From Haliotis rubra (lineage: Eukaryota): 64,000 bases of DNA. Below, in pieces: positions 25,397 to 62,100 of the stretch. The stretch's first letter is position 1, and the number at the start of each line of letters is the position of its first letter. The stretch spans positions 124,001 to 188,000 of the forward strand of contig NW_025765204.1 of NCBI RefSeq assembly GCF_003918875.1, in the 5' to 3' direction. The notes beneath the pieces are model-generated. The model worked only from the letters and a program-made list of their open reading frames with translations. It was not told the origin of the DNA and made no database searches. The translations under genes were made by a program, and so were the position numbers.

Positions 25397-25742
25397 GTGA
25401 GGTGAGGTGAAATTGGGTTTTACGTCGTGCTTGAGAATATTTCGCTCATATGACGACGTGCATGCGTGTGTATGTGTATGTGCGGCTGCTTGTACTAGTC
25501 CAGACTTAAGCTGGTTTTATAGTGCTAGCCCACTGAGATACCATGCCACAGTGAAGCATGAATACCCCACTCAGACACATTTTTCTGACTCCGAGCCGAC
25601 CAGTCCTTGTTGTACCCATTAATGCCGAGCGCCAGGCAGGGACCAACAAGTACCATATTTTAACGTCTTTTGGTTTGACGCGGTCGGGGATCGAACCCGC
25701 GACCTTCCGCTCTCTGGGCGGACGCTCTAACCACTACACCAC
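25397..25742 (-). mobile_element. tRNA-headed V-domain SINE
   Basis: Minus strand: tggtgtagtggttagagcgtccgcc...ggttcgatccccgaccgcgtcaaaccaaaagacgttaaaatatggtacttgttgg (V-domain-like), with a (TCACC)n-type tail. Confidence 0.7.
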
Positions 25743-25907
25743 NNNNNNNNNNNNNNNNNNNNNNNNNNNNNNNNNNNNNNNNNNNNNNNNNNNNNNNNNN
25801 NNNNNNNNNNNNNNNNNNNNNNNNNNNNNNNNNNNNNNNNNNNNNNNNNNNNNNNNNNNNNNNNNNNNNNNNNNNNNNNNNNNNNNNNNNNNNNNNNNNN
25901 NNNNNNN

Positions 25908-26935
25908 TATGCGTGTAAGTGTGTATGTTGTGTATGTATATGCGTGTGAGTGTGTGTTTTGTGTATGTATATGCGTGTGAGTGTGTATGTTGTGTATGTA
26001 TATGCGTGTGTGTGTGTTGTGTATGTATATGCGTGTGAGTGTATGTTGTGCATTTATATGCGTGTGAGTGTGTATGTTGTGTATGTATATGCGTGTGAGT
26101 GNNNNNNNNNNNNNNNNNNNNNNNNNNNNNNNNNNNNNNNNNNNNNNNNNNNNNNNNNNNNNNNNNNNNNNNNNNNNNNNNNNNNNNNNNNNNNNNNNNN
26201 NNNNNNNNNNNNNNNNNNNNNNNNNNNNNNNNNNNNNNNNNNNNNNNNNNNNNNNNNNNNNNNNNNNNNNNNNNTGTGTATGTTGTATATGTATATGCGT
26301 GTGAGTGTGTATGTATATGCGTGTGAGTGTGTATGTTGTGTATGTATATGCGTGGGTATGTTGTGTATGCATATGCGAGTGAGTGTGTGTTTTGTGTATG
26401 TATTTGTGTGAGTGTATGTTGTGTATGTATATGCGTGTGTGTATGTTGTGTATGCGTGTGAGTGTGTATGTATATGCGTGTGAGTGTGTGTTGTGTATGT
26501 ATATGCGTGTGTATGTTGTGTATGTATATGCGTGTGAGTATATATGTATGTGCGTGTGAGTGTGTATGTTGTATATGTATATGCGTGTGAGTGTATGTAT
26601 ATGCGTGTGAGTGTGTATGTTGTGTATGTATGTATGTATATGTGTATGTATATGCGTGGGTATGTTGTGTATGTATATGCGTGTGAGTGTGTATGTTGTG
26701 TATGTATATGCGTGTGAGTGTGTATGTATATGCGTGTGAGTGTGTATGTTGTGTATGTATATGCGTGGGTATGTTGTGTATGTATATGCGTGTGAGTGTG
26801 TATGTTGTGTATGTATATGCGTGTGAGTATGTATGTATATGCGTGTGAGTGTGTATGTTGTGTATGTATATGCGTGTGAGTGTGTGTGTTGTGTATGTAT
26901 GTGCGTGTGTGTATGTGCGTGTCTGCCTGCCACTA
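25908..26935. repeat. Complex TG-rich micro/minisatellite (tatgcgtgtgagtgtgtatgttgtgtatgta)
   Basis: Direct inspection; flanked and interrupted by gaps. A pure (TG)n tract lies at 27403-27490. Confidence 0.95.
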
Positions 26936-27399
26936 TGCGTGCGTTCATTCGTCCGTCCGTACATGCGTGCGTATGTATGTGCTGTTTGAACTTCAGATTG
27001 CTTCGTACCTAGGTTTGTTAAACCTTTTCATTCGTTTCATAAGTCAACGTAGCACTACGTTTGTCTTCGTAAGGACGTAGTACTTACAATCTCCTTAAAG
27101 CTACTATAACATTGCGTGATCTCTGGTTCAAGTAAAGGGTGTGTGTCGAGGCAGAGACCATTTCTCTGGTTGAGGGTCCATCTAATATTCTGCTGACATC
27201 GGCCAGAGTGACAGGAACGAGGGGCAGTAAGCGTGTGGGGGAATGTTGTTTTATGCCTCTGATCAACAAAACCACTGGTTGACAGGCTGCAAGAGAAACG
27301 AATCATGTCGTAAAATATTATGACATGACGACAGCATCAGCCAACAAAATATAGTTACGATATTCAATTTACAGGGTGCAGTTTTGACGTAGAGGGGTG

Positions 27400-48833: not shown

Positions 48834-49312
48834 TAGGGACCGGTCCTTATTGGACGGGGTGGAGCTGTAGGAATCAGATTAGGGTCACCAAAAGCAAGTA
48901 CAGTCTCAAAGTAGGAGCCCTTAAACATACTACACACATTCATGTTAAAAATGGAAAATTGCTTTAAATTTAATGTGTTTTTTTTTCTCTTAAATGAGGG
49001 AGGCAGTGGGGTAGCCTAGTGGTTAAAGTGGCATTCGCTTGTCGCCCCGAAAACTTGGGTTCGATTCCCCACATGGGTACATGTGTGAAGCCCATTTCTG
49101 GTGTCCCCCACCATGATAATTCTGGAAAGTTGCTAAAAGTGGCATAAACTAAACTTACTCACTCACTTAAATGAGGGTCATGAATAAAATCTGAAAGGAG
49201 TCGTGATATTTATCAAAATGTAGGAATAAGGGGAGGGTCATTATTTTCAGTACCCTACAGCATCAGAGACTTCACAACCAACCCACTCCTGTAATTTAAG
49301 GACCGGTCCCTA
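48834..49312. mobile_element. MITE with TAGGGACCGGTCCTTA termini carrying an internal family-A SINE
   Basis: TAGGGACCGGTCCTTA / TAAGGACCGGTCCCTA; internal SINE 49000-49167 with TSD cttaaatgaggg. Confidence 0.65.
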
Positions 49313-53400: not shown

Positions 53401-54799
53401 CTTGTCTTGTGTAGAAGATGAATTTTTAACCTTATAACGCTAGTCGTAAAATGGCCATAAGATAGGACTGCGTCGCTGATTCGACTTGTCCCGGAATAAC
53501 ACGTGCTGATCACGAATGTTTCAGAGAATGTACGTGACGTCATTTCCTCTGATTGCCTGTTCTTGTGACGTCATAATAGAATGTGCTGCAAACAGAATAT
53601 GAAATGTCTGTGCCTTCATGTTGGCACTTCAAGTTCAGTAAGAGTGATCCCCACATGATTTGATATGTTCTCGTCTATCGGAACTGGTGTAGCTGAGATT
53701 GTCCTTGGTTACACCTATGGCGTCACGTCAGATACAGTCACAAAAAAATCTAATATCGCCTTATCAGCTCAAGGAGCTCTTGTCGTCTTCGTCCATGCTC
53801 TTCTATGTTTCCGACCACGTTGAAGCAGGGACGTTCCTGTTCGTTGTTCATCTCCCCTGACACTCACACCTGATGTAGCATCGAATTCATTCTGGAACCG
53901 TAAAGGAATATTTTGAGTCCTCCAAGCTGGGCTTTTGTTTATGGGTAAGTTCTCTTCTGGGATGACCAGGTTAGAATATTAATTATCCGTCCGTCCGAGA
54001 TGATGGCGACAGATTTTCTCAGTTACCGTTACAGATAGGGAAACCTTTCCCAAATGTGGTATGTGTTTTCATGACATGAATCTTGTGGTGGAGTTTAAAA
54101 ACAGGAACCAAATGGGATGAGATGTTGATGACCATGTCTTCCTGTTTTACCTAAACCCCAAACCTCCTCAAAATAACCCTGCCCCTAATAAATAAAATAA
54201 ATTGAACGAAGCGGCACGAAAATGGCTGACGTGTCCAGTGTAGTGCATTGATAACTATACCTTTCTACATTGTCATGATTGTCAGGTTGCCCTATACATA
54301 ACTGATTATGTTTAACCTCTTGGGTGTCGAGTTATAGTCGAGTGAATTTTTGTGCGTGGTGTTTTATTTAGTTACAAAGTGATGGTTGAAGAGAGTGAGT
54401 GAGTACGGCAGTACGCCGCTTTAAGCAATAATCCAGCAGTATCACGGCGGGGGACACCAGAAATTGGCTTCATCCTCTACCAATGAGTAGGTAATGGAAC
54501 CCGGGTCGGCGTGACGAGAGAACACGTTAATCACTATGTTACCCTACCGCCCCTGCTGGTTGAAGAGATGGACATTTATAAGAAGGTCCAGGCAAAAGTC
54601 CCATTGGTTGATGTTGCCCTATTGTTTTTACAAACAGCTAGTATATTTAATCTGAAAACGTTCTTTTTTGTTATAGAGACTACTTTCCGTACGAGGATTG
54701 CTGATGCCACTAACAAATGCCACAAACTGAGTCCAGATACCTTCGTATAAAGCTGCCGGAATGTAACACACAACAGTTTAAAGTGGTGAAAGGTAAAGC

Positions 54800-57700
54800 A
54801 TGGTAGACCGAATCCACGTGTTAATCAAACTTCATTTGGACCAGCTGGAGAATATGGGCATGGCCACCGAGTATTATACCACACACAAACAATGCTGTTC
54901 TCTGATTGGACAAAATGAATACCGGGCTGAACATCAGGACATACCTTCCACCGGGAACTTATCATGTCGGTTCTGTCTGAGGATAAATCACGGCCATAAC
55001 GTATCAAGGATCCGTTTGTACATGGATCAGAATTATATGTTTTCGTTTTGTGTTTACGATTGCAACGAAGACAGCGCCAGTCTCAACATGAACAATAACA
55101 GTAATTATACTGATTCAAGTAGCTGTGGCGGGAAAGTACAATCTTCCCGATCCATGACATCCGTCCCAACCAGTACGTTCACTGGATACTTGATGAGTTC
55201 GCGGCTGCTTGGGTCGAGGTCACGAGACACCTCCAACGGCTACGGCATTGTGTACAGATCGCGCAACACACGAAGAGATACACGTCATTCATTATTCGAT
55301 GTACGTGCTCCAGCGTTGTCCATCTTGTCTAGAGCAGAGGGTCTGACAGATATTTACGCCAAGACCAAGCAGCAGCAGTTACGTACCCTGGGTAAGGTGG
55401 GGTCGGCTGGAGGAACACCCGTCGACAAGGTTGGGCAGGAAACAGTGTTTTCAAAGAAACCCAGGACAACCCCTACCATTTTGACTGGTGGTTTAAGGGT
55501 TATAAATACCGGTACTCGGTCTGATCTAGAGATTTCTGGTGCTGCTGTACAGAACATCCACGACTTCCGGTCTGGTCTAGACATCACAGATAGTTTTGTA
55601 CAGAACGTCCACGACCTCCGGTCTGGTCTAGACGTCATAGATAGGTCTGTACAGGCCATTCACAGCTTTGAGCCTGGTGCAGCCGTCACAGATTGTTCTG
55701 TACAGACCATCCACAGCGTTGAACCTGGGGCAGACGTCACACATAGGTATGTACAGACCATCCACCACAGCTTTGAGCCTGGGACACACGTCACAGATAG
55801 GTATGTACAGACCATCCACAGCGTTGAACCTGGGGCAGACGTCACACATAGGTATGTACAGACCATCCACAGCTTTGAGCCTGGGACACACGTCACAGAT
55901 ATGTACAGACCATCCACAGCGTTGAACCTGGGGCAGACGTCACAGATAGTTCTGTACAGGCCATCCACAGCATTGAACCTGGGGCAGACGTCACAGATAA
56001 TTCTGTACAGACCATCCACAGCATTGAACCTGGGGCAGACGTCACAAATATTTCTGTACAGACTATAAATAGCTTCCTTTCTGGTGTGGACGTCTCAAAT
56101 ACCTGTAGTTCTGAACAGACCATCTACAGTTTTCAGTCTGATCTGCCACAACGATTTGATCATAACTCCAATAAACCTGTGCTCGACGTTTCACGGACAC
56201 GGCAGACTAATGGAGATATATTGAAGATATCTTCGATTGCAACAGCAAGGCAAACGGCATTGGTAGATGCGGACTTGGCGAGTACTTCTTGGATACATCA
56301 TAGCAGGTACGACTGGTTCCGTTCGTTGGTCACAAAGGAATCGTCCATTTGATATGTCCTTATTCCCTTATACACACAAAGTATCCTGTAGTCGGCCTCT
56401 AAAGAGTATGGTGTTATATGTTTCTCTTGTTAGAAATCCTTATCTGTTTTCAGAGGATTTTACTCTGCGTTGTAACTATAGGTATATGCTTAAACATGTA
56501 TAACAGCTTGTAGAAGCGTCTCTGTACGACGCTGGGATAATCTAGTTATTATACTATGACAGTCCATTGTCAACAGGTTTCCACAACGGTGTCTTAGGGG
56601 GTTAGATCACTGACTTTGTCCGACCAATGCTTGACTCTGAGAGTGTGGGTGCGAATCCCGATTTTACTCAACCTACCAAAAGTACTAAAATCTGTACTTT
56701 ACTGGAAAAGTGTAATCTCAGATATAACATATATTTACATAACAGGTTTTATACAAAATTATAGTTGTTATAATAACATTATCAGATCACCGCTATAAGG
56801 ATGCATTATGGCCGATGCGGTGTAGCCTTTCACTCACTCACTGACTAATGTCGCTTTCTTGTCCCTATTTCCAGAAGAGCTCTTCACAACTCACTAAGAC
56901 CCTGTGGCTGCAACACATCAGGCCAGGAAAGACACTGCTACAACAAAGAGAAGCCTTTCACATCGCAGTTTGTGTTCAAGAAGTTGTTTGGTCCAGATTT
57001 CCGTGTAGCTAAGCACTACTGGCATATCGAACCTCCTGTCCTTCCACCACCATGTGTAAAATACAAAGGCAAATGTGATGTATTTCTAAACCATATTATA
57101 GGTCGGGGAACGTTTGCAGAGATTGCCATAGCAACACTGCACGTAGACAGACAGTGGAGGTACGTTGTGCTCAAGGAACACTACACTGACATGGTTTCAA
57201 AGGACCATGTGTTCCGTGAGGCAAAGATGACTATGTACTTGGAACCTACTGGTTGTGTACCAGTATGTTATGGCCTAATTCAGGACGGAATTGGTAGTCA
57301 TAGTGTTGTCCTGGAACTCGTCGGAACAGGCTCCACCTTGAGCGATGTTCTGGGAAAGGAAACCCTGTTGAAGCAACATTGGCTGAGCATTGCATGGCAG
57401 CTGGCAGAGGGCCTGAGTAAGATCCACGAGATGGACATTCTGATCAACGACGTCAAGCCGGACAACGTGTTGGTGGATCTGTCCAGCCCAGTCCCTGTCG
57501 TGAAGTACTGCGACTTTGGATGTGGGTCCTATAGGTATGGCATTGTATTCACGGATCCGGACATGGAACAGTTTGTCCACCTAGCTCCTGAAGTTCGTGC
57601 GGCTGGTCAGACATCAAAGGCTAACGACGTGTACGGTTTAGGGAGAATGTTGGGACAGATTGTTGATGTGTCTGGGATTTCGGCAATAGTAACACCGTGT

Positions 57701-58015
57701 CAGAGATGTATGGATGACAACCCTGATCTCCGGATCTCAGCTGGGGAGGCAAGTGCGTGGCTGAATGCTGTTCACAAAGAAGTGGAAGACACGTCAGATC
57801 CATACGTCTCCAGCGGCTACGGGTCGGCGTCATCTTCCTCCTACACCTCTCAGTCAGAGCACCCTACAGGTCGTAACTGTTCGAATCCAAGTGACACGCG
57901 GCATCAGATTAATGTGTCAAGTCTAAATATTCTTATCCTACTAATCCTCATGATAGTCATGGCATTGCATCCGTGGGTTATTGGTCCCTGCTGTTACTAT
58001 AAGTGCTGCATATAG
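54800..58015 (+). CDS. Two-exon gene: disordered N-terminus, 17-aa tandem repeats, divergent protein kinase, C-terminal TM and Cys-rich tail (one frameshift in the repeats)
   Basis: Exon 1 about 54800-56306 (start ATG uncertain: 54800, 55022 or 55088) with phase-2 donor AG|GTACGA; exon 2 56875-58015 after the tttccAG acceptor, phase-compatible and open. Kinase motifs GRGTFAEI, VVLK, INDVKPDN, DFG, HLAPE, DVYGLG. A 4-nt deletion at about 55899 shifts the frame between ORF 54800 and the 56086 ORF. Confidence 0.72.
55546..56140 (+). repeat. 51-bp coding tandem repeat (VQTIHSVEPGADVTDxx, about 12 units)
   Basis: gtacagaccatccacagcgttgaacctggggcagacgtcacagatagttct units; diverged outer units keep the frame and the V-Q-x-I-H-x-F pattern. 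Confidence 0.9.
56586..56843 (+). mobile_element. tRNA-headed SINE in the kinase-2 intron
   Basis: Degenerate A/B boxes (cttagggggttag / gtgcgaatccc) and a (CACT)n tail. Confidence 0.5.
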
Positions 58016-59176
58016 TTCCTTCCTAGGGGAACGGGGGCGGTGGGGTAGCCTAGTGGTTAAAGTGTTCTCTCGTCACGCCGAAGACCCGGGTTCGATTCCC
58101 CACATGGGTACAATGTGTGAAGCCCATTTCTGGTGTTCCCCGCTCTGATATTGCTTGAATAGTGCTAAAAGCGGCGTAAAACTATACTCACTCAATCCTA
58201 GTGAAACGAGCATGTGTCCTTTATCCGTGCCAGGATTCTTGCGGTGTCAGCATTACATATTTGCTCGTTTCACCAGTCTCATTTGAACACCTTATTAGTG
58301 AGTTGTTTTCCCCTATGTTGATCGAGACTCACAAACACTAGTTTGCCTTTCCAAGCACCGAACAGACTTTGATTGTCGCCGTGAACTGACATTAATATGC
58401 CGACGACGGAGACTGTCAACCATTCATGGAGTGACCCACTTCGATATGTATATATCCGCTTATAACCTGATATAATCACATTGTCTAGTATCACTACCAA
58501 AATATAAATCATTGGCACTTGCACATCAATCCACGTTTCATAAACAGTTATACAATGTCATATAAGAAGTATTTGTTAGAAGATATACTGTATTTATTTT
58601 TCTATATATTCTACATAATTGTTCAATATGTATTTTCCCTAGCTTTTGATACCCAATTACTGGAATTGAATATATGTGTGAAATAGTTAATAAATGTATG
58701 TGATTTTCTTTAATTACTGAGAGAAAAAACTGCCAGACAAAAGACCGATGTTTGATGGTGGCCAGAAATCTCAATATCACATGACAAAATCAGTCACATG
58801 TCCTGAATGCCCCAACGTATTAAATGTATGCTTGAGTTAATCGCAGTTTGTGGTTTTTAACATTCAAAACCAGGGGCCGGATTCACTAAACTTCTTAGAA
58901 TTTTCTTAGATTTATGCTTAAGTTTCCTTAAGGAATTCTTAGCTGAGAATTTATCTTAAGTAGCAATCCACCAAGCCACTAAGCATAAATCTTAGCTGAG
59001 ATATTTTAAAATTCTTAGAATTTTCTTAGTGAGAAACGCATGGGATTATGGGATACAAATTTATGCTAAGAATATTCTTAGATGACGTATTGGAAATCCC
59101 CGTATCTATTAATAGCATAGTTGAACTCTCCTCGCGTGGAGATAGAAAAAAACATACGCAGACGACAACAATCAGA

Positions 59177-62100
59177 ATGGAGAAGAAAAGTGTCAGAAAA
59201 CCCAACTGGACGGCCGAACAGACCTTGTATTTAACTCGCCTTGTTGAGGAAAACAAGGCTGTGTTACTCGGCAAGTTTGGACCGGGCGTGACATCTGCGC
59301 GAAAGAAGGAAATTTGGACACATATTACTATGCAGATCAATGCCACCTTCACAGGTAAGTGACGATCGTAAATTTTGAGTGCACTTTAAAATGTTATCAC
59401 CTTGTATATGTAACTGTAAAGTATTTGCCTCCTACAATAATTAATGTATTTTTATTGATTTGTAAAAGAATTTAAACGTTGAAGTAAGTGCAAGTTTAAA
59501 AGCGAGATGGTTCATATGTGCTATTTTCGATCACCAATCTCAAAACGGAAGGATTTCCGCCCGTAACCCCCGTATTTATTTCCAATCATTATTTGCCTGA
59601 GGATATCCGCCTATGTTTTTTATAAACAGGCTATACCTAACCTAAAACCCTAAAATCCAACCCCAAACATTACCCTAAACCCTTGAAATAATCCTAATAA
59701 ATAGAATACATTTCAAGCGGGGGTTACGGGCGGAACTCTTACCATCAAAACTTTGACGAGTGATATTGGATTTATGCATTCAAACATCATATTGTTTGTG
59801 CATATCAACTGATTATAATCATTTGAAGTAACAAATACTGAAATCAAATGTTACACATCTTCTGTTGTAACAGCTTACAAGTATACTACAACCGACATGC
59901 TTAGTATGTTCATTGAAATAGTAATGTATTTGGGCCAGTTTTTTTGTATCTAGTCAAATGTCAATGAAAATGATAACAGTGAATTAGGGTTGGTTTGACA
60001 TGTTGATAATTCTGTAAATTTATCTCAGAAATATAGGTTGATATTCAGGTATTTATCAAGGCAGGTAAGATATTTCTATCGCAGGTTTTCATGTGAAGGA
60101 ATCACACATGAAACATTCTATTTCACCCAAGTGCGAAGTAAGCACACATGTATCATTTTATTTTACCCAAGTGTGAAAGACTCACACATTTTCATTTTAT
60201 TTTACCCAGTGTGAAAGACTCACACATTTTCATTTTATTTTACCCAGTGTGAAAGACTCACACATTATCATTTTATTTTACCCAGTGTGAAAGACTCACA
60301 CATTATCATTTTATTGTACTGCAGTACTTTTCATGAAGAAATGACCCATTTGTTTTGTTGTGTTTGCAGAATATTTCTCATGTGTACCATTATTTTATTT
60401 AATCAAACACTGACCCTATGATTTATTGTTCATTATTTTGACTCCCTTAAAGCTTTTGAATGGCAGTCCATTATGTGGAGTTGGTTCAATTCCAACCAGA
60501 GGCATACACAGAGTCAACATTTATCTGTTTTCATGTTAATATTAACAATAGTATGTTGAAAATAGCACTAATATTGTGAAATGTGACTAATATTAGTGGG
60601 CCAAGTGGGCCCTTATCATACCTTCAGACTGAACCTTTGTTAATATCATAATTGGGTTGTCAGTACCATTACATAATAAATTTTAAAATGTGAATTTAAT
60701 GTAAATGAAAATATTTGATTTCATATTTGTGTCCTCAATTGTTTCATGAAATGTTTTTTTCATTTTTTCCCAGGATGTGTCAGGACAAATGACGAGGTGG
60801 AGAAAAAGTGGCATAATACCCAGTCGAAGTCCAAGTCTGAAATTGCAGCATATAAGAAAGGGGCTGTATCTACAGGTAAGAGCTCAAATATAGATTTATG
60901 GTCCATACTTATTGATTTTGGACAGTCTGTGTGTGATGAAAAGTGATTACTTTGAAGGAGTATAAATTGAGTAATAAATGGTCATGGGTGTAACGGGTTG
61001 TGATGGGTAAGAATGACGTTCAAACACAGGCTATGGGTGTGAGGTTTTATTTGCAGTTAGAGAGGTAACGACACCCTGCAATACACAAAACAATAACATA
61101 AGGCAATATCATAAAAACATGATGCATCTTTCACATACGAGTACCTTACAATTACACATTCACATTCGCATATAATATATTTGTTAATGAGGCATAAAAT
61201 CATTGTCTTGATTACATAAAGAATTCATCAAGGGCGATAACTATATTTATGGGTACTATACATGAGGTATACAAATGTACAATGAACATGGATCATTGTT
61301 ATAAAGTACATTACATGTTCTCAATACAATAATTAATTATCACTTTGTGGCACCAATGATACAGATGGCAATCAGTGATACATATGTATCATAATATGTT
61401 ATTTACAATATATACTATTCACAACAAACTATTCAGAACTGGTGTCTGCCACAATGGTAATAATAATAATGAGAGAATGATGTATGAGTATAGATTATAT
61501 AGGCAATGTCAGATCATATTATTACTTACTAGTATGTGACATTATTTAGAGCTTACCAAAAGAAGTGCAAGTGATAAATGACATTGGTCAGTGTGCAAAT
61601 TAGGCTGTTTACAGGGTCTTGAATTGAACAAAATATATTCACCCCAAAAATCCCCTGACAAAATAAGTTGAATAGACCGTCATGAAAAATATGAATTTAA
61701 ACTACGTCTGATTATGTTTCAAGCCATGGGTAATTATGAAATTATCTATACATTGCAGGTGGTGGGCCGTCACCTTGTCCACTTTTAACTGAAACAGCAG
61801 AAGTCGTGTGGGACATACTTGGGAAGGACAATGTGTCCATATCAGGAATACCAGATTCAATGGACTCAACTCTACTGCAGATAAATGAGTCTACTCAGTC
61901 AAGGTTTGTCAAAACATTCAGCTTTACTGTATGTCATTAGATAATTCCTTCAATAAAATTGGTTGCATTACATTCCAAATATTGATAACAAATTTTATTT
62001 CCAAAATAAACTATTGATGAAATCCAAAATGTAAAAATCACATATCAAGAAGATTATAAAGCTCTCTTTCCAACATTTATCCCTTTACTGCCTTTAATGT

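Follow-up and report, generated by a model that had tools for sequence, protein, structure and literature searches.

Do three separate open reading frames (ORFs) in a stretch of abalone DNA belong to one gene, and what would such a gene encode? The stretch is a 64,000-nucleotide (nt) segment of the Haliotis rubra genome (NCBI RefSeq assembly GCF_003918875.1, contig NW_025765204.1, positions 124,001 to 188,000 of the forward strand), which we call the window and to which coordinates refer unless another sequence is named. The ORF listing of the window contains plus-strand frames beginning at 54800 (422 residues), 56086 (88 residues), and 56972 (347 residues), the same starts that a preliminary description, made from the letters of this DNA without database searches, had joined into one repeat-bearing kinase. 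We consider it probable that they form a genuine gene of two coding exons, LOC124266837, whose product is a tail-anchored and probably active kinase of the non-RD class with a disordered, repeat-bearing front, that this gene belongs to a family restricted to Haliotis, and that the single break in its reading frame is most likely an artefact.

Two coding exons and their orthologs

Coding exon 1 spans positions 54800–56306 of the forward strand, from an ATG at 54800 to a splice donor at 56306, and contains one frame break. Its reading-frame basis consists of the ORF at 54800–56068 together with frame 1, which is open at 55879–56352. The exon is followed by a GT-AG intron of phase 2 on the same strand at 56307–56874, with the donor CAG/GTACGA at 56306/56307 and an acceptor at 56874/56875 where a pyrimidine tract precedes CAG/A and the phase matches that of the donor. 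Coding exon 2, which includes the stop codon and lies at 56875–58015 on the forward strand, encodes a pre-kinase extension, the kinase domain, a linker, a transmembrane helix, and a Cys-rich tail.

The locus corresponds to RefSeq protein XP_046557596.1 (700 residues), which is annotated as ‘uncharacterized protein LOC124266837 [Haliotis rubra]’. Exon 1 and exon 2 were searched separately, and database proteins served as full-length queries. In an exhaustive search of representative proteins, 379 of 379 residues encoded by exon 2 were identical to residues 322–700 of XP_046557596.1, with the match beginning at the predicted acceptor, and the RefSeq protein uses the identical junction, 56306/56875. 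The phase-matched intron proposed from the letters alone is thus canonical in its sites and common to both models. The gene can no longer be called hidden, as it was at first, since a RefSeq model exists and its orthologs and paralogs have been named, though as uncharacterised proteins.

A word search with the RefSeq protein recovered one ortholog each in H. asinina (669 residues), H. rufescens (829 residues), and H. cracherodii (859 residues), and the four proteins form one clade in a maximum-likelihood tree (support 100/100). All of them share the same layout, in which an N-terminal region is followed by 17-residue repeats, a kinase with the catalytic stretch ILINDVKPDN, a Ser-rich linker, a hydrophobic helix, and the motif GPCCY. 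The loci of H. asinina and H. cracherodii, the two covered by the synteny comparison, are syntenic with the window, and in blastn the non-coding DNA on either side of them aligns with it; H. rufescens was compared as a protein. The coding sequence of H. cracherodii consists of two exons, the first of which is 478 uninterrupted codons long, contains all of the repeats, and ends AGC AG/GTACGT at a donor homologous to that of the window. This arrangement bears out the proposal that the repeat exon and the kinase exon are parts of one gene.

The first 249 codons of exon 1, at 54800–55546 on the forward strand, encode a Ser/Thr/Arg-rich N-terminal region that lies outside the repeat. This region is open and free of stops in three species, with amino acid identities of 48–73%, and the open N-terminal frame of H. 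asinina (MSDRIHML) is the homolog of the frame that begins MVDRIHVL at 54800 in the window, so the proposed start near 54800 holds. XP_046557596.1 begins instead at an internal ATG, which maps exactly to 55193–55195 on the forward strand, and the RefSeq orthologs of H. rufescens and H. cracherodii begin ~130 residues upstream of this Met. Because the H. asinina and H. cracherodii orthologs, the H. rufescens protein, and the conserved reading frames all favour the longer version, a two-exon model that starts at 54800 appears better supported than the RefSeq model for H. rubra.

Exon 1 is otherwise a solitary sequence. In genome-wide searches of H. rubra, which covered 1.378 Gb in 2855 contigs, exon 1 and its N-terminal region were found at a single locus only. 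Neither exon 1 nor its repeat gave a significant Pfam match, a feature search of the ESM Atlas returned no usable match for them, and the structure matches from that resource all had a TM-score <0.5. The N-terminal region is without a hydrophobic segment, and 19-residue hydropathy peaks at 0.6–0.7 in exon 1. Ratios of nonsynonymous to synonymous substitution rates (dN/dS, Nei–Gojobori) against the orthologs are 0.25–0.33 for the kinase exon and 0.43–0.66 for the 249-codon N-terminal region.

The annotation of H. asinina uses a GC donor, ACA AG/GCAAAC, at ~7530–7600 of the H. asinina locus, a position homologous to window ~56251. It lies 17 codons (51 nt) upstream of the site that is homologous to the GT donor of H. 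rubra and H. cracherodii and that reads GG/GTAAAA in H. asinina. Since the GC and GT donor sites are both of phase 2, alternative 5′ splice sites are possible in H. asinina, judging from sequence.

A frame break inside the repeat array

The break in exon 1 falls within a tandem repeat. Tandem Repeats Finder (TRF) reports a 51-nt array at 55517–56063, and in register the array comprises 12 units of 51 nt (17 residues of the type VQTIHS[VF]EPGADVTDxS) at 55547–56163 on the forward strand, the last of them degenerate, in agreement with the original count of about 12. Nine of the units are 51 nt long and the other three measure 54, 57, and 47 nt; all length changes except that of the 47-nt unit are multiples of 3. 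The unit at 55700 is identical to that at 55805, and the unit at 55751 almost matches that at 55856, a pattern suggesting that a two-unit (105-nt) block was recently duplicated.

The 47-nt unit, at 55856–55902 on the forward strand, is 4 nt short at ~55899–55902 relative to its twin unit at 55751–55804, so the 4-nt gap noted earlier near 55899 is indeed present in the assembly. The short unit shifts the VQTIHS reading out of frame 2 and into frame 1. Frame 1 is open only from 55879 onwards and frame 2 ends in a stop at 56068; the switch between them must therefore fall between these two positions. Nanopore reads at ~30x went into the H. rubra genome assembly, which was polished with Racon and with a single round of Pilon (PMC6774278). 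The frame break is most likely either a small indel error in this assembly of Nanopore reads or a variant carried by one haplotype, rather than a feature of the gene; a real and very recent disabling deletion ranks behind such an artefact, and a rescue by splicing, as in the RefSeq model, ranks behind both.

If the 4-nt gap were a true deletion, LOC124266837 would be a very recent pseudogene or would yield a 422-residue N-terminal fragment without the kinase. We regard this as unlikely. It would fit the closure of both frames in the sequence as assembled, the fact that the lineage of H. rubra and H. asinina had already lost part of a conserved exon-1 motif, and the weak constraint on exon 1, for which dN/dS is 0.66 between these two species. 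However, the kinase exon contains neither a stop nor a frameshift and shows a dN/dS of 0.25 against H. asinina, the remaining length changes in the array all preserve the frame, and small indel errors are to be expected where a near-identical tandem repeat has been assembled from Nanopore reads and polished once with short reads.

The RefSeq model avoids the break by a 152-nt intron at 55747–55898 on the forward strand, which excises three repeat units, the defective one included, and bridges the two frames. Were this model the true transcript, translation would start at the internal Met at 55193 and the intron would be real, a case that we judge slightly less probable again than a true deletion. 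A script run over the exon coordinates found that 55747–55898 is the sole GT-AG placement that reproduces XP_046557596.1, its donor (AG/GTATGT) is good, and RefSeq models often rest on RNA-seq. Its acceptor, by contrast, has no pyrimidine tract. As many as 130 GT-AG pairs within the array could restore the frame, so the presence of one frame-restoring intron in the model carries no weight. The intron removes exactly three units, as would be expected from a difference in copy number or from a gene predictor that avoids frameshifts, it has no counterpart in the orthologs, and the ORF upstream of the RefSeq start is conserved. The RefSeq model for H. rubra is thus probably too short at its 5′ end and probably contains an artefactual intron in the repeat.

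Several observations weigh against the two-exon reading as a whole. RefSeq’s own model departs from it both in the internal start and in the intron within the repeat, and the 5′ end of the H. rubra gene and the state of the 4-nt gap were read from the assembly alone. The dN/dS values are fairly high for a kinase, indicating modest constraint. An in-frame deletion common to H. rubra and H. asinina has removed 16 residues (LKDHLVQRIC.LLIHG in H. rufescens and H. cracherodii; alignment columns ~447–462, window ~56190–56200) that form the core of the exon-1 motif conserved among paralogs. Finally, an AlphaFold model of the repeat, the check that had been proposed to distinguish a beta-solenoid from disorder, returned regular and periodic short strands, but its predicted local distance difference test (pLDDT) score of 39.5 makes the model too unreliable to tell the two apart.

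Kinase domain, C-terminal helix, and Cys tail

Exon 2 carries the conserved part of the protein. A pre-kinase extension (KPFTSQFVFKKLFGPDF...WHI..P.LP) is encoded at 56936–57055 on the forward strand, is common to the paralogs, and packs on the kinase in the AlphaFold model (pLDDT 83–96). The protein kinase domain itself, at 57056–57805 on the forward strand, matches Pfam Pkinase with E = 8.2e-18 and 65 bits against a cut-off of 31.7. Its Lys is encoded at 57173–57175, its Glu at 57218–57220, the catalytic I-N-D at 57443–57451, the Asn at 57464–57466, DFG at 57512–57520, and APE at 57584–57592, all on the forward strand. In the numbering of exon 2, G76/G78 of the Gly-rich loop, K100, E115, D192, N197, D213-F-G, and A237-P-E are all present, and they vary little or not at all among 51 relatives. 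Across an alignment of 51 relatives, the beta3 Lys, the alphaC Glu, N-D, the Asn, D-x-G, and P-E are invariant. Thus the preliminary description was right in recognising a kinase that has IND in place of HRD and retains the catalytic D, K, and N along with DFG, and these residues stand in invariant or nearly invariant columns. A catalytic loop that reads I-N-D where HRD is expected defines a non-RD kinase.

Structure prediction agrees with a kinase fold. With the alignment of relatives as input, the AlphaFold model of exon 2 had a mean pLDDT of 82, and the kinase domain exceeded 90. Foldseek matched it to many kinases with a probability of 1.00, the top matches being tyrosine kinases at 14–19% identity. 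The best sequence and profile matches in the PDB were scattered over CAMK, STE, TKL, TK, and bacterial kinases with similar scores, and relatives in sequence databases bear Dictyostelium-derived names (‘DDB_G’, ‘shkC’) that imply the TKL group. The protein belongs to the eukaryotic protein kinase superfamily (PF00069/PF07714) and to its non-RD class, and no named kinase family can be assigned to it. Because the catalytic residues are kept and the catalytic loop has the form D-x-K-x-x-N, it is probably an active kinase of the Ser/Thr type. More speculatively, the non-RD loop suggests a regulation that is independent of phosphorylation of the activation loop.

Non-RD kinases are known from innate immunity, where they include IRAK1, Pelle, and the plant XA21/FLS2 class. 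The product of LOC124266837 resembles these in having no Arg before the catalytic Asp. It differs in that PDB searches revealed no specific sequence kinship with them and in that it has no death domain, leucine-rich repeat, or other domain of an immune type. A link between LOC124266837 and innate immunity would be one of analogy only.

Beyond the kinase domain, a Ser-rich linker at 57809–57913 on the forward strand (exon residues 312–346; pLDDT <50) is predicted to be disordered. It leads into a C-terminal transmembrane helix of 22 residues at 57914–57979 on the forward strand, which AlphaFold models as a helix at residues 347–368 and which is conserved in the four species. Exon residues 343–374 make up the only segment of the protein with a Kyte–Doolittle hydropathy >1.6. 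The helix ends 11 residues before the C-terminus, and the ~850 residues that precede it include no signal peptide. The 11-residue tail, IGPCCYYKCCI, is encoded at 57980–58012 on the forward strand. Its GPCCY motif is invariant in the four species, with C693, C694, and Y695 each unchanged, and its second Cys pair is not conserved; depending on the species, the protein ends in ...YYKCCI, in ...YSKC, or, in the H. asinina model, in a run-on into sequence of a short interspersed nuclear element (SINE).

The hydrophobic helix and the GPCCYYKCCI ending had both been noticed at the outset, and the idea of a tail anchor holds up. As ~850 residues without a hydrophobic segment precede a single helix close to the C-terminus, we infer that the only plausible topology is a tail-anchored one, in which the kinase and the repeat would be cytosolic and the IGPCCYYKCCI tail lumenal. 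Human VRK2A is a tail-anchored kinase of this kind, in which one C-terminal transmembrane helix attaches a cytosolic kinase domain to internal membranes. The likeness is an analogy of layout only, and VRK2A is without an N-terminal repeat region. No VRK chain occurred among the PDB and Foldseek matches listed, and no search aimed at CK1/VRK kinship was made; a literature search on tail-anchored kinases with VRK2 found nothing.

The preliminary description had also suggested a lipid anchor, in which the paired Cys residues beside the helix are S-palmitoylated and help to fix or sort the kinase. Cys residues next to transmembrane helices are common palmitoylation sites, and the invariance of GPCCY in four species would suit such a role. 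The idea nevertheless fits poorly and we think it doubtful. By topology rules, all of the Cys residues, being C-terminal to the only helix, would be on the lumenal or outer side of the membrane, opposite the cytosolic DHHC enzymes, and palmitoylation by these is therefore unlikely. Moreover, conservation does not extend to the second Cys pair, the paralogs stop directly after the helix with no Cys, and a lumenal disulfide, for example in a covalent dimer, is at least as likely.

Immediately downstream of the gene, ~20 nt after its stop codon and thus in the 3′ untranslated region, blastn places a dispersed SINE-like element of ~160 nt at 58034–58197 on the forward strand. Further copies occur in the window at 49002–49165 and 54393–54554 (inverted), and several more in locus sequence L026. 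The copy after the stop is shared with H. asinina and absent from the orthologous site in H. cracherodii, and it is just here that the protein ends differ among the species. A tRNA-like stretch after the stop is not confirmed as a tRNA gene; ARAGORN found no tRNA there, and the stretch behaves as a dispersed SINE. An Rfam search of 53500–59500 gave no match.

Repeat turnover and the Haliotis kinase family

The number of repeat units differs in every species compared, with 12 in the H. rubra genome, 5 in H. asinina, 10 in H. rufescens, and 11 in H. cracherodii, so the array is variable in copy number, as had been supposed. Across the species, its first and last units are positional orthologs; those between them are specific to each species. 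No forward frame but VQT stays open through the array in H. rubra, H. asinina, and H. cracherodii, and the array has no copy elsewhere in the H. rubra genome. These comparisons indicate a coding repeat of variable copy number that evolves by unequal exchange. It is scarcely credible that the repeat is non-coding (5′ untranslated region or satellite) with the kinase exon alone translated: the missing Pfam match, the low-confidence model, the changing copy number, and the partial opening of more than one frame and of the opposite strand in H. rubra would allow it, but the VQT frame alone is open in all three species, unit lengths change in frame in every case bar one, units in corresponding positions are conserved at the protein level, exon 1 reads as a single open frame in H. 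cracherodii, the array is confined to this locus, and the frame of exon 2 runs upstream to the acceptor without a start codon that could serve exon 2 alone.

LOC124266837 is not alone in the genome of H. rubra. A search with the kinase exon identified ~10 paralogs at 43–46% identity, plus more distant ones; over the kinase and the pre-kinase extension, the Haliotis paralogs are 43–48% identical. One paralog ORF was 100% identical to an H. rubra RefSeq protein. The RefSeq proteins of the paralogs are 885–1142 residues long, and those of Haliotis (for example H. rubra LOC124287862 and LOC124292020; H. rufescens LOC124149148 and LOC124149186) are named ‘uncharacterized’ or ‘probable serine/threonine-protein kinase DDB_G02...’. 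They share with LOC124266837 an organisation in two exons with a phase-2 intron ahead of the extension, the exon-1 motif, the pre-kinase extension itself (EPFPSEYVFKR.CGPSF in the paralogs), a catalytic loop of the form x-N-D (xND), and a hydrophobic C-terminal end, and they contain long low-complexity regions with tandem repeats of their own. In the one paralog that was mapped (L005/P0006), a phase-2 intron at the equivalent place also splits an Arg codon. The paralog motif also aligns to the end of H. cracherodii exon 1, with E = 1e-5 and 4e-4. The architecture is consequently not unique to this gene, as first thought.

LOC124266837 differs from these paralogs in several respects. The repeat lies N-terminal to the kinase in LOC124266837 and C-terminal to it in the paralogs, and the linker between kinase and helix is ~35 residues long against 300–500. 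LOC124266837 has DFG and a Cys tail after the helix, whereas the paralogs have DMG. The exon-1 motif, which the paralogs keep, is partly deleted in the H. rubra and H. asinina orthologs of LOC124266837.

In the maximum-likelihood tree, the four orthologs form one clade with nine Haliotis paralogs (support 99/97). In a search of representative proteins, 191 clusters were matched at E <1e-10, and all of the named ones came from molluscs or from the brachiopod Lingula. The wider xND clade comprises sequences from Lingula, Lottia, Argonauta, Nucella, Mactra, Solemya, Potamilus, Liolophura, Mizuhopecten, and Pecten whose kinase domains are 30–42% identical. They resemble LOC124266837 in all of the other catalytic residues as well as in the Asn-Asp of the catalytic loop, which is invariant in the 51 relatives aligned. 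Members outside Haliotis differ in having other flanking domains, and some of them contain several kinase domains or are very long. No C-terminal anchor was detected in the clade relatives outside Haliotis. The lineage restriction proposed in the preliminary description is thus upheld at the level of the tail anchor, which was seen only in Haliotis members. On these grounds we place LOC124266837 as an old and divergent member of a family of predicted tail-anchored kinases that is restricted to Haliotis and lies within a mollusc and brachiopod xND clade. A search of the literature by locus name found no paper that names LOC124266837 or its paralogs, and a paper on the oyster kinome describes 28 unclassifiable ‘oyster-specific’ kinases and nothing closer to the xND clade, which is without a literature of its own.

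Elsewhere in the window, an intronless 361-residue ORF at 7260–8345 on the forward strand encodes a kinase with canonical HRD, DFG, and APE motifs that likewise has a long hydrophobic stretch at its C-terminal end. A copy with 53% identity is found directly before the start of the window (C314:120903-121940), and the genome has dozens of more distant ones. At ~24% identity to LOC124266837, this kinase belongs to a different family. Adjacent ORFs of 201 and 181 residues at 14266–15417 on the forward strand resemble fragments of the reverse transcriptase of non-LTR (long terminal repeat) retrotransposons. A CA/TG-rich low-complexity repeat at 25660–26964 produces long spurious ORFs on both strands and is interrupted by masked runs of N, and other masked N runs lie at ~3.4–3.7 kb and 11.3–13.0 kb.

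We propose that the product of LOC124266837 would sit on a membrane by its single C-terminal transmembrane helix with the kinase facing the cytosol, having been inserted by the tail-anchor route so that the Cys tail would be lumenal. Its long and apparently disordered front would bear the 17-residue repeat, the unit number of which changes fast between abalone species. Speculatively, this Ser/Thr/Asp-rich repeat may act as a docking scaffold or as an auto-substrate. A bolder idea, to which we give little credence, is that the tail-anchored xND kinases of Haliotis are genus-specific signalling platforms on organelle surfaces, in which a constitutively primed non-RD kinase is switched on by clustering through its fast-evolving repeat, for example in antiviral or antibacterial defence. 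If true, they would represent a functional analogue of tail-anchored immune adaptors and IRAK-type kinases that evolved independently in molluscs.

The immediate value of these results lies in annotation, as the probably artefactual intron of the RefSeq model hides a frame break or an assembly error. The gene was already annotated, albeit as uncharacterised, and tail-anchored kinases are known as a class; there is as yet no pointer to a new mechanism. What is new is an undescribed abalone-restricted family of ~10 apparently tail-anchored non-RD kinases with fast-changing repeats. Since tail-anchored kinases are uncommon, this Haliotis family could help in studying how lineage-specific kinases are wired to membranes.

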